Source: Oikopleura dioica (Eukaryota > Animalia > Chordata). From it: a stretch of 64,000 bases of DNA. Both the position numbers and the translations under genes were made by a program. Below are positions 44,980 through 49,536 of this stretch, piece by piece. Numbering within the stretch: the first letter of the stretch is position 1; each line of letters begins with the position of its first letter. The notes under the pieces are model-generated. The model had not been told where the DNA came from and ran no database searches. It saw only the letters and a list, made by a program, of their open reading frames with translations. The stretch covers positions 372,001 through 436,000 of the forward strand of contig OU015569.1 in the NCBI GenBank assembly GCA_907165135.1, read 5' to 3'.

Positions 44980-47326
44980 ATGTCCTTCGGCAAAGGCGAT
45001 TTCGGCGGCGGCTCTCTGAGCACAAGCCCCGGGGCGAGTTCCAGCTCGACGATGGACTACAACAGAATCACACAAGTCGTTTCCGCGAACACCACGAAAA
45101 TTCAAAATCACGTCAAAGAGATCAAAAAATTAGCTGAACAAGTTGGAACCGAATTGGATAATTCAGACGTCAGAACTAAAATGTAAGTCTTTTCTTCATT
45201 ATTTTATTATTAAAATTTCGAGAAGCCGAAACCTGCGGCTTCTAGCTTTAAAGTATAAAAGCCGCGCGAAGCGCGGCTACTTTACTTTGCTTTCTCGAAG
45301 CCGCAAGATTCGGCTTCACGTTTTTAATGAGTAACAGATTGAATATTACTACTTTTGACTCGAAATTCATTTCATTTTTAGTCAACAAACTCAGACAACA
45401 ACAAAGCGATTATGTCAAGACACAGAAAAGTTACTAAACGAGTTAAAAGGTCTTCCCGCGCCGGATTCACCCGTAAGACCCCCTTTTCCCCTTCCTGTAA
45501 CTGACTGTAACTCTTTAGGCGGAGAAGCGGGAGCGAAGAATAACCCTAACTCGTCTGGCGAACAATTATTCGAACGCGCTGAACGAGTACCAAAGAGCAG
45601 TCGCGACTTGCTCAATCGCGAAAAGGCCCAAATCAGCCAACAGAGCAACTCATCCGAGGGCAACTCTTTGATCGCGCTGGATAATGGGTAAGAATCGAAA
45701 TATTTTGCGGCTTTGAGCATCAAAATGGCCCGAGCTCAGCAACCTGTATAGAGAACCTGAGTCAGGGTCTGAAAGATCTTATAAGGCTTTTTATTAAAGA
45801 TTTTTCAGACCCTGACTCAGGTGTTCTACGCAGGTTGCTCAGCCCGGGTCTTTTTGTCGCAAAAGCCGCAAATTTTATATAAAGCGCTCCGCGGCTTTTG
45901 TAATTTATCAATCCCTTTTTAACGTAAAATTCTAGCGCTGGTCAAGCCCAATTGCAGCAACAGCTCTCGCCAAACGAGATGGCTCAAATGCAGGATCGCG
46001 AAAACGCGATCATCCAGCTCGAGGTAAATCAGCAGCAGCAAGAGCAAATTGAGCTGGACCCGCTGCAACGGGCGCAGGACGAGGAGCTGGGCCGCCTCGA
46101 ACAGGAAATTGAGGATATGGCCGAAGTGTTCACGGAGGTCCACAAACTCGTCCATGAACAGGGCGAAGTTGTCGGTAAGAAGCCTTTTTAACTCTTTCCA
46201 AACGACTTAAATTTTCAAATAATTAAAATCAATGAGTGCTATTTTAAAATTTTACTGATTGAATGGCTTTTACACGTGATAATTACTAATTTTCAGATTT
46301 AATCAGCCTGAATCAAGACTAATAGATAGGGTCGCCATTTAACGGAAAAACGACTCTATGACGTGTTTGTTTTAACGGATTTAACAATCTTCGATAGGGT
46401 CCCCTTTTTAACGGATTTTCTGGAACCTAGATCAAGAAAATCCGTTATTTAAGGGACCCTATCTAAGATTGTTGAATCCGTTAATACAAACACGTCATAG
46501 AGTCGTTTTTCCGTTAAACTGGCGAGCCTACTTCTGTGTTTTTTTGATATGCGAGTATTTTTTCGATTTGTATTCAAAATTTGCCATATCCTCAAATTTC
46601 CACGTCCTGCGCGGTCCCGGCTGAAAACTGCAAAATTCCGATTCGCAAGATTACGAATTCTGAATTTGTGTTTTAGGCGGACATCGCGGACGTGAACATG
46701 ATTTTCAAAGACCTTGCCACAATGGTGCATGATCAGGGCGAAATCATCGGTAAGTTTCAATTTCGGGGACGCCCTTTTTTAAAATTTCTTGTTTTCTTGA
46801 TTTTTGGATTTTATGTTTAACTTATTCGTTTATTTATAATCTCGGTGTTCAAAGTTGAAATTACATTTCAAAAGCTTAAAATATTTTTTAGACTCGATCG
46901 AGCAAAACATCGAAACTGCAGTTGTCGACATTCAATCAGGAAATACACAGCTTCGTCAGGCCCGAGAGCATCAGGTGTGTACGAAGTTCTAGAGCTACCT
47001 ACTTTGTGTAGTTTTGAATCCCCATCGACGCCTCTGATTGGTCAAACGAGCCCATATCTTTGGAAAAATGGGAAGTGCCTCTGATTGGTCAAGCAAGCGC
47101 TTTTCCCTTTCTCTAGAAATATGGGTTCGTTTGACCAATCAGGTGCGTCGATAGGGATTCAAAACTAATTCGCTTGATTAGCGACACTTTTTTCTCGAGG
47201 CCTCTCTTTTTAAAACCATATTTTCAGCAAGCTGCGCGGAAGAAAAAGTTCATCATCGCCATCGTCTTTCTGATCTTCATTCTGGTGCTGTTCCTGATCA
47301 TCTGGTTCTCGTGGAAGACCTCGTGA
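44980..47326 (+). CDS. STX7/STX12: Syntaxin-7/12-like Qa-SNARE with alternative SNARE half-exons
   Basis: DYNRITQVVSANTTKIQ, RLANNYSNALNEYQ, AIIQLE|ADIADVNMIFKDLATMVHDQGEII|DSIEQNIE, TM FIIAIVFLIFILVLFLIIW. Confidence 0.93.
46339..46517. repeat. ~180-bp near-perfect hairpin in the syntaxin intron between the alternative SNARE exons
   Basis: TTAACGGAAAAACGACTCTATGACGTGTTTG... pairs with ...CAAACACGTCATAGAGTCGTTTTTCCGTTAA. Confidence 0.85.
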
Positions 47327-48539
47327 GTCTTTCCCAGTTCTTCTATCGTTCAACTTAATTTCTTCAATTTCTTTTATTCCTTCCAGAGATTGACCTTTCT
47401 TGTTTTTGCGAGTTGATTTTTTCTCCGGGTTTTTTCAGTTTTATAATTTAAAATTCTATTCTTTTCGTTCACATGTCAAAAAAACGACCCTGGAAAATTT
47501 CAACCGCTGTATTTTTTTTATCACAATTACGAACTTACACACTTTCCGCTACGATTCTTATTTTAAACAGACACGGTATTCTAGAGTCTCTGTGACCAAT
47601 CGACAGTACACTTTATTTTTACTATCATTCATGTTCAATGTCCGGTGAATTTTACTGTGCAATTCTCCAATTCTAGCTGAAGTTGACCCACTTTTCTTAC
47701 CTTCCGCTGGGCCCCCTTTTTTCTTCAACTTAACCTCTTGCCATTTTCGAGCGGTTTAACCCGTTGTGCGCGGCGCTTTCCTCCACGCAAACGGGTTAAA
47801 AATACGGGCTGGTGGCACGAAGCGTCAAAAAGTTTGTCTGTGTGGCTATTTGACTGCTGATTGGCCGGTTCGCTGAGTAAAGGTTTCTTATTGGCTTTAA
47901 GTTTTTGGCCAATCAAAAGCCTGTGTTCTGTCTACCGGCTAATAAGCAGCCAAATAGCCATACATGCAAATTCTATCGCTTCGTTCCTTCAATTCTCAAG
48001 AAATTCATGCTCAACTCCGCACAGACAAAGCAAAATGACAAATTTCCGCAACTGTATTACTATTCAACATTCGTATTTCCACAAAACCACTTCTCAATCT
48101 AACCATTCATCTATTTCAGAACTTATGAGAAAAGCGCTTCGCGACAGGAAGAGTGCTCCAGCTCCAGTTGAAAGAGGAATCTACTGAGAAACTGGAACTC
48201 CGGTCCGGAGTTGAGCAAAAAATGGAAAGTGAAGAGCGGAAAAAGCCGGCTCCAGCCAAACATTCCAGCGCCGAAAAATGGAGCAGGTTCAGGCGAAGAC
48301 GAAGAAAACGACAGGAACCGCGAAGAATCATCGGAAAAGCTTCAGGCGAAGAAGACTCAGAAAATGACGACGGAAACGATCGGAAAAACTCCTTTACCCG
48401 ATTATGCGAGGAAACAATCCTCTGCTGCTCTATATTATTCAATGAACCATTACACCTTTTACACTATTACACTATTTTTTTAAACTCAAGACTCTTTTCA
48501 ACCTTTTCTTGTTTTCAGAAACCGGATAAAACTCAAAAG

Positions 48540-49255
48540 ATGCCACCAAAGTTCGATCCCACCGCCATCGTCGAGGTCTACCTCCGAGTTGTTGGTGGCG
48601 AAGTCGGTGCCACTTCCGCCCTTGCCCCAAAGATCGGTCCCCTCGGTCTCTCCCCAAAGAAGATCGGTGACGACATCTGCAAGGCCACTGGCGACTGGAA
48701 GGGTCTCAAGATCACTGTCAAGCTCACCATCCAGAACCGACAGGCTCAGGTAACCCTTCATCCTCTTCCTTCTTCTCGTTTTGATGGCCAAGACCGCGGG
48801 GCGGTGCCCGTTTAAAGCAAAGAACTTGTCGGGATCCGCTAAGGAGGTGGACTCACCTGCGTAGCTTTTCATGGTCGAGGAGGAGCTTGTAGCTTCACTG
48901 AATAAGTTCGAACGATTCTAGGTCTCCGTCGTCCCCTCCGCCTCCTCGATGATCATCAAGGCCCTCAAGGAGCCCCTCCGAGACAGAAAGAAGGTCAAGA
49001 ACAGTAAGTCCCCCTCTTTCTATTCCTTCCGCTAATCGCAACTGCTCAGTCCAGCACAACGGTAACATCACCATGGACGACATCATCAACTGCGCTCGAA
49101 TCATGCGACCACGATCTGGCGCCCGGGACCTTTCCGGCACCATCCGAGAAATCCTCGGCACTGCCCAGTCCGTTGGATGCACCGTCGACGGCTCCGACCC
49201 ACACGATCTCATCGAACAGATCCGGGCCGGCGAACTTGATGTTCCTCTTGAATAA
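48540..49255 (+). CDS. RPL12: 60S ribosomal protein L12 (uL11), 3 exons (48540-48749, 48922-49003, 49050-49255)
   Basis: MPPKFDP...[28 protein letters not shown]...[18 protein letters not shown]|[18 protein letters not shown]...[14 protein letters not shown]. Confidence 0.98.
48781..48862 (+). promoter_or_regulatory. Intronic RNA element resembling the 28S rRNA GTPase-associated centre (H42-H44), candidate RPL12 autoregulatory site
   Basis: GTCGGGATCCGCTAAGGAG matches eukaryotic LSU GUCGGAAUCCGCUAAGGAG 18/19, ACTCACCTGC matches 10/10, and AGACCGCGGGGCGGTGCCC matches AGACAGCAGGACGGUGGCC 15/19, all in collinear order. The rRNA reference is from memory of the human/yeast sequence. Confidence 0.8.
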
Positions 49256-49536
49256 ATACTGTAGCTTGAGTTGAGCAACAAAAAATCAATCTTTGGAGAA
49301 TCTTCGTTTTGCTTACGATCATTCTCTTCCTTGTTTTCATGTGCTTATTTGCAGGGCCAGATGAGTAGTTTTATTGCGTATTTACAGGGCATTACAGTAA
49401 CAGTTATTGCTTGTGCCAATAAACGGGCTCAGAAATGATGGCAAAATCGTAGCTATGCCGGCGGACGTGGCTCTTATCCGACTTCAGCAGCGGACTTCTT
49501 GGCAAAAGTCCCTTCGGATATCTGATCCAGTATATT

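Follow-up and report, generated by a model that had tools for sequence, protein, structure and literature searches.

The RPL12 gene and its productive mRNA

The analyzed window (a stretch of 64,000 nt of the Oikopleura dioica genome) carries on its forward strand the gene encoding ribosomal protein uL11 (RPL12), composed of three exons and two introns (Table 1). The assignment of exon 1 is based on its translation, and the Pfam family PF03946 was matched on homologues. Contigs from four marine metatranscriptomes contained both productive junctions, i.e., 48749|48922 and 49003|49050, together with the tail of the spliced leader and the poly(A). In these mRNA contigs position 48516 is preceded by GATTTCGATTGTCTAA, the tail of the leader with which two cDNA contigs of related organisms (L020 and L021), discussed below, also begin. 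Intron 1 of the window is far longer than intron 2.

Two observations concern the gene and its surroundings. A SNARE/syntaxin gene is located immediately 5' of RPL12 on the same strand (window positions 46024-46749, L013:352-747, and L019:330-779), also in distant lineages, and together with the trans-spliced RPL12 it may form a conserved operon. Moreover, one spliced RPL12 product from a transcript source (P0001) lacks seven residues of exon 2, EPPRDRK; this loss could be due to an alternative site within exon 2 or to an assembly slip.

Table 1. Positions of the features of the RPL12 gene and of the rRNA-like element of its first intron in the window.
Feature	Position	Strand	Description
Spliced-leader trans-splice acceptor	48516..48518	+	CAG; RPL12 mRNA contigs of four runs begin at 48516
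Exon 1 (RPL12/uL11)	48540..48749	+	ATG at 48540, 70 codons, N-terminal domain; translation and junction in transcripts
Intron 1	48750..48921	+	172 nt, phase 0; donor GTAACC, acceptor TCTAG; junction 48749|48922 in four runs
Pyrimidine-rich spacer	48753..48777	+	23 of 25 positions are pyrimidines
Mimic of the 28S GTPase-associated centre	48792..48864	+	Comparison with own rDNA, RNAalifold, covariance model, covariation
H42-like stem of the mimic	48796-48800/48856-48860	+	
Lower H43 of the mimic	48802-48804/48836-48838	+	CGG/CCG
Upper H43 of the mimic	48807-48810/48830-48833	+	
Variable H43 loop	48811-48829	+	19 nt, in place of the rRNA 1067 loop
First in-frame stop of the retained intron	48813..48815	+	TAA, inside the variable H43 loop
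Junction of the mimic	48839-48843	+	CUAAG
H44-like stem of the mimic	48844-48846/48852-48854	+	GAG/CUC; 5-nt loop GUGGA
GT of the proposed cryptic donor	48847..48848	+	GAG|GTGGAC; first two bases of the H44-like loop
Putative branch-site region	48896..48906	+	CACTGAATAAG; 16-26 nt upstream of the 3' splice site; inferred
Exon 2	48922..49003	+	
Intron 2	49004..49049	+	46 nt, donor GTAAGT; junction 49003|49050 in four runs
Exon 3	49050..49256	+	Stop TAA; poly(A) added near 49285

The rRNA-like element of intron 1 and its conservation

The Oikopleura genome searched in this work (64.3 Mb in 19 contigs) contains rDNA repeats located about 8.7 kb apart on contig 1 (G000:C1:92860-127810), and these were the source of the 28S rRNA reference. 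In this reference the sequence GACAGCAGGACGGTGGCCATGGAAGTCGGAATCCGCTAAGGAGTGTGTAACAACTCACCTGCCGAA (L001:1470-1535) constitutes the H42-H43-H44 junction of the GTPase-associated centre, which is the binding site of uL11 on the ribosome. This role of the junction was reportedly described by Wimberly and by Conn in 1999. Compared with the 28S of the same genome, intron 1 shows a high local identity (a run of 19 nt with a single change and another of 9 nt) within an element in which both hairpin loops of the rRNA are swapped out, the H44 loop being shortened to GUGGA, and the three-way junction is preserved. A covariance model, the training set of which included both the window's own stretch and the 28S site, gave 69.2 bits at the intron-1 site as its sole match in the 64-kb window, and it also matches the 28S site. 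Scanning of positions 48400-49400 against Rfam indicated no family (the single match, with E = 4.2, was noise), and two further places in the genome containing the 12-mer TCCGCTAAGGAG (L007 and L008) were rejected as chance.

Relatives of the gene were searched for with the read-through ORF of the window (48540-48812), which retrieved from marine assemblies many ORFs composed of exon 1 and intron read-through. This search and one pattern scan provided 12 further appendicularian lineages of intron 1, with an exon-1 DNA identity of 80-96%, and the final comparison set comprised 13 appendicularian RPL12 introns, i.e., the window and the 12 from marine assemblies. The mimic was present in all 12 further lineages. 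Unguided RNAalifold recovered the same three helices; in the model-fitted alignment 97% of the cells were paired, and six of the 14 pairs were changed on both sides. None of 500 shuffles reached the covariation score, and slid controls paired at most 52%. The hairpin loops of the mimic vary freely, while the flanking intron diverges much more than the mimic, most strongly on the upstream side. Occurrence in 13 lineages, covariation and the shuffle controls show that the mimic is real and under selection. It should be stressed that the whole intron 1 folds no better than its shuffles (z = 0.83) and, taken together with the covariation, this places the signal in the covariation and not in the folding energy.

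A general pattern of the mimic was found at 27 loci of the JGI contigs, 26 of which were scanned with the model. Among them were three real RPL12 introns (L036, L039, which is the L010 contig, and L050), and a weak partial match at L043 was rejected as chance; the loci found also included L032, which derives from a human-gut assembly. Outside appendicularians, the orthologous intron of a bird RPL12 locus (L022, 3624-4270) showed no mimic in the covariance model search, even with the filters off, and a coral RPL12 locus (L023) has no intron at the intron-1 position.

The position of the mimic within the intron is fixed on one side only. Each of the 13 lineages has 51-57 nt separating the mimic from the 3' splice site, as against anything between 35 and 312 nt separating it from the 5' splice site. 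In nine lineages intron 1 measures 160-186 nt; all large insertions are located upstream of the mimic, and the segment of 51-57 nt downstream of it is never interrupted. The enlarged introns (L020:306-730, L021:300-556, and, on the minus strand, L050, with an intron 1 of 326 nt) contain MITE-like insertions with abundant inverted repeats. Downstream of the mimic, all lineages can be aligned at a yUAA(A)G motif located 16-26 nt from the intron 3' end. This motif is probably the branch site, and the mimic would then lie about 30 nt upstream of it.

The donor of intron 1 differs from that of intron 2. The hexamer GTAAGT forms the intron-1 donor in only one of the 13 lineages, as opposed to the intron-2 donor in 10 of 10; the other intron-1 donors are GTAACC, GTAATT, GTACGT, GTACGC, GTTAGT, GTCGGT, GTGAGA, GTAGGC, and GTAAAT. 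In L013, L018, L019, and L036 a perfect donor hexamer GTAAGT (CCCTGTAAGTGAACAATTCAG) precedes the intron-1 acceptor by 11 nt; it overlaps the putative branch motif and is too near the acceptor to define an intron.

Furthermore, the stretch that leads from the mimic to the putative branch motif (48865-48921 in the window) contains in most lineages a small hairpin or palindrome of differing sequence, e.g., AGCU-UGU-AGCU in the window, CCGAGCUCGG in L011, and GUCG...CGAC in L016, and this varied hairpin may be a second conserved structure. On the opposite side of the mimic, the pyrimidine-rich spacer that the preliminary description had noted between the donor and the mimic is real, but among the relatives it is restricted to the window's lineage. 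The predicted minimum-free-energy fold pairs this spacer (CUUCUUCUCG) with CGAGGAGGAG at 48876-48885 (GAGGAGGAG at 48877-48885), which would close the mimic.

The in-frame stop, the internal GT and the unproductive RNA

The preliminary description, made from the sequence of the window, had proposed a poison-splicing layout, in which an in-frame stop in one loop of the mimic and a cryptic donor in its second hairpin produce NMD-targeted messages. The geometry of this layout was reproduced in our analysis. Translation past the normal donor adds 21 residues before the TAA, which indeed sits within the extension replacing the 1067 loop. The AG|GTGGAC site was likewise found within the H44-like hairpin; its use would leave an intron of 75 nt (48847-48921) and retain 97 nt (48750-48846). 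The stop lies well 5' of intron 2, i.e., 188 nt (in the case of retention) or 113 nt (in the case of the cryptic donor) before the exon 2-3 junction, and both distances exceed the approximately 50 nt required for NMD.

Neither of the two elements has to be designed in an intron of 172 nt. Among 5000 dinucleotide shuffles of intron 1, 87% contained an in-frame stop, and 50% had one no later than position 64. Depending on the lineage, the retained intron first meets an in-frame stop at intron position 22, 49, 64, 97, 121, 124, 160 or 166. In L011 the frame is closed only by the TAG of the 3' splice site, and L014 has no in-frame stop and shows a frameshift only. The reading frame of the haplotype P0032 stays open across the full 177 nt and into exon 2, so its retention would yield an insertion and not a premature stop. 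P0032 differs from L013 by TGG versus TGA located 12 nt 5' of the 3' splice site, and the 177-nt intron of the TGG haplotype is an open insert of 59 codons between the two domains of uL11. The idea of the stop as a design feature is thus not supported, since its position is lineage-specific across the 13 lineages and its occurrence is expected by chance; the TAA at 48813 looks like an incidental first in-frame stop of the window's lineage.

The proposed donor at 48847 fared no better. An AGGT occurs in 53% of 5000 dinucleotide shuffles, and the site matches CAG|GTAAGT at four of nine positions, lacking +4A and +5G. Three other internal GTs equal it at 4/9 and a fourth scores higher, while the real donor reaches 7/9. 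A GT follows GGAG in eight lineages (with the loops GTGGA, GTTATA, and GTTGTA) and is absent from the remaining five of the 13 (CTTAT and CTTAA), in which the mimic is kept; the resolution of the exon-1 tree is insufficient to show whether the GT-bearing lineages form one clade. The GT-bearing loops copy the rRNA, as exemplified by GUUAUA compared with GUAACA in Oikopleura 28S, and the H44 loop of Escherichia coli is GUAAUA. The GU at the start of the H44-like loop mimics the rRNA loop and can therefore be explained without any donor function. The junction 48846|48922, proposed in the preliminary description as a check, was absent from the contigs of the four marine metatranscriptomes, a search of low power; the same applies to the JGI contigs, where the corresponding pattern (CCGCTAAGGAG joined to GTCTCYGTYGT) gave 0 matches, also with low power.

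Unproductive RNA of another kind was found in two relatives. The cDNA contigs L020 and L021 retain the entire intron 1 (425 and 257 nt, respectively, both enlarged by insertions) and lack intron 2. Their order is: SMART adaptor, complete 40-nt spliced leader, 5' UTR, exon 1, intron 1, exons 2 and 3 joined, and poly(A). As every recovered genomic lineage extending far enough has intron 2, it was most likely removed from these molecules while intron 1 stayed. Both contigs came from a search able to find read-through ORFs only, and RPL12 is very highly expressed, so even a small unspliced fraction can be assembled and L020 and L021 could simply be residual unspliced message. For the lineage of the window, the contigs of the four marine metatranscriptomes showed zero depth over intron 1 and productive mRNA only, which bounds the abundance of other forms only loosely, since contigs drop rare forms. 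RNA keeping the whole intron, a candidate unproductive isoform, was thus seen in two relatives and not among the contigs from the lineage of the window itself.

The genome (G000) encodes UPF1, UPF2, UPF3, and Mago domains above the Pfam cut-offs, which makes an NMD pathway plausible, and removal of intron 2 would leave behind the downstream junction on which NMD depends. Among the read-through ORFs, P0003 and P0002 have exon 1 and the first six intron codons in common with the L011 lineage, followed by complete divergence, and may represent another intron haplotype or an insertion.

Proposed feedback through intron 1 and alternative explanations

Based on the above, we favor, with a probability of roughly 0.6, the view that uL11 gates the retention of the whole intron 1 through the GTPase-centre mimic, and that no cryptic-donor switch is involved. 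Intron 1 would act as a feedback sensor, folding as a copy of the 28S H42-H43-H44 junction, i.e., the ribosomal site of uL11. Free uL11 present in excess would bind the intron copy, and the bound three-way junction, located 51-57 nt from the 3' splice site and about 30 nt above the likely branch site, may then hinder spliceosome assembly. The block would presumably concern assembly on the U2 side of an intron that is short, intron-defined, and weak in its donor. The resulting message would keep the whole intron and could not yield full-length uL11, given that nearly all lineages then run into a stop or a frameshift, and it would be degraded by NMD or held back. The GT at 48847 would be a part of the loop imitating the GUAACA of the rRNA, not a working second donor. 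Since retaining almost any intron is unproductive, it is the mimic, together with the weak donor and the spacing, that would carry the regulatory information. The switch by folding or protein binding postulated in the preliminary description is thus supported in one of its branches: the conserved and covarying mimic, the non-consensus donor in 12 of the 13 lineages, and the retention cDNAs speak for it, but the cryptic-donor route is not supported.

In that route, binding of uL11 or refolding would shift splicing to the AG|GT at 48847 and produce a 97-nt extension containing the TAA, an NMD substrate, in the manner of the alternative-site isoforms of ribosomal protein genes in Caenorhabditis elegans. 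The GT, the residual intron of 75 nt, and the stop are all real, and a GT follows GGAG in eight of the 13 lineages; moreover, a predicted alternative hairpin AGGUG/CACCU (in the window, L009, and L011) could hide or expose the GU, and Oikopleura tolerates non-canonical splice sites, which also counts in favor of this explanation. The unproductive ribosomal protein isoforms of C. elegans are described as products of incomplete intron removal (PMC3177206). Nevertheless, we regard the use of this donor as very improbable, considering that five mimic-keeping lineages do not have the GT, that the match to the consensus is poor and AGGT is common in shuffles, and that the rRNA-like loop accounts for the GU. 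In addition, a bound protein would cover the H44-like loop, the junction was absent from the four runs and the JGI contigs, and the unproductive cDNAs that were found keep the whole intron.

Another explanation accepts the mimic as functional but places its action elsewhere than in regulated splicing: the intron, excised or retained, could for instance titrate or chaperone uL11, or the element could enhance splicing, and the retention cDNAs would be leftovers. The exclusively productive mRNA of the window's lineage, the bias of the search toward finding retention, and the single haplotype (P0032) without a premature stop upon retention are consistent with it. However, both retention cDNAs are trans-spliced and polyadenylated, with intron 2 already gone, an interplay with splicing is suggested by the weak donor of intron 1 and by the constant distance to the 3' splice site, and C. 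elegans rpl-12 provides a precedent (PMC4937301); we therefore consider this explanation unlikely, if much less so than a neutral relic, i.e., a functionless piece of rDNA once copied into the intron. The high local identity to 28S is what would be expected of such a copy, but a relic would hardly have been kept in 13 lineages with diverged flanks and with compensatory changes in its stems, nor would it have had both loops replaced with the junction preserved and the position relative to the 3' splice site fixed. We find it barely credible.

With regard to uL11-gated retention, we see an even chance that the mimic is the first cis element for uL11 feedback described in any organism, i.e., a three-way junction of the GTPase-centre type gating the removal of a whole intron from about 30 nt above the branch site. 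A bolder and less likely extension is that in the O. dioica clade the GU of the H44-like loop was also recruited as a protein-gated second donor. The element can be read in the sequence and is supported by covariation, and it comes with natural variants (loops replaced, insertions tolerated upstream only, 3' spacing fixed), which make the mechanism testable.

Comparison with known autoregulatory systems

A few ribosomal proteins are known to act back on the splicing of their own transcripts; in the case of uL11 the genetics is known from C. elegans and the RNA element is not. To our knowledge, which is based also on a literature search, there is no mRNA mimic known to bind uL11. In the full texts searched, no paper describing a GTPase-centre mimic in an RPL12 intron was found, the cis element of the worm included. 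The principle itself is shared with bacterial and archaeal ribosomal protein leaders, which mimic rRNA and act on translation, e.g., L1 on the leader of the L11 operon. Like the proposed Oikopleura element, they offer an mRNA copy of an rRNA site that competes for free protein. Unlike the splicing control proposed here, the control of the bacterial L11 operon is exerted on translation, and its regulator is L1, not L11.

The closest counterpart with respect to the gene is rpl-12 of C. elegans, which has an NMD-targeted form responding to RPL-12 dosage and an intron conserved among Caenorhabditis (PMC4937301, PMC8047918, PMC5765348). Autoregulated unproductive splicing of this gene was described by Mitrovich and Anderson in 2000, as cited in the same three papers. 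The two systems share uL11, a conserved and alternatively handled intron, and a premature stop in the unproductive form. The worm protein has been demonstrated to exert such feedback, whereas in Oikopleura it is inferred, and the citing papers describe for the worm an incomplete removal of the intron, in contrast to the whole-intron retention in the two relatives. If our reading is correct, it would explain in structural terms the RPL12 autoregulation for which genetic evidence from C. elegans has existed since 2000. An NMD-sensitive isoform is also attributed to human RPL12 (Cuccurese et al. 2005, as cited in PMC3177206 and PMC7354994), and the NMD-targeted isoforms of both species, treated as established in the preliminary description, are supported by the papers citing the original work (PMC4937301, PMC8047918, PMC3177206, PMC7354994). 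The similarity to the human gene consists in the presence of an unproductive NMD-targeted isoform; the mimic itself was compared in the bird intron instead, and none was found there.

With respect to the element, the most similar system is the L10ARE in introns of RPL10A/rpl-1 (Takei et al. 2016, PMC4937301), which is bound by the protein, switches splicing for negative feedback, and is widespread in animals. In both cases a conserved intronic element resembles the rRNA site of the protein, with the binding in Oikopleura being presumed. However, the L10ARE involves a different protein and the L1 stalk site, and in the worm it operates a two-donor switch, while Oikopleura RPL12 has no conserved second donor. 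Compared with the C. elegans rpl-1 type, Oikopleura RPL12 showed neither a conserved second donor nor, in the low-power contig searches, RNA with an alternative junction, but it does have a stop more than about 50 nt before the junction as well as the NMD/EJC machinery.

Yeast RPL30 is autoregulated through an intron element of the same kind, i.e., by binding of the protein to its own transcript. Intron autoregulation was likewise described for yeast RPS14B and RPL22 (PMC4838235, PMC5755908). In these three yeast genes the protein binds an rRNA-like structure of the pre-mRNA, splicing is blocked, and the unspliced RNA accumulates or is degraded, which resembles the proposed course of events in Oikopleura RPL12. 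The Oikopleura gene has in common with the RPL30/RPL22/L10ARE type both an rRNA-like element in its own pre-mRNA and structure-preserving conservation. The yeast elements either lie close to or at the 5' splice site or consist of one stem-loop, whereas the Oikopleura element is a three-way junction whose spacing to the intron 3' end is fixed.
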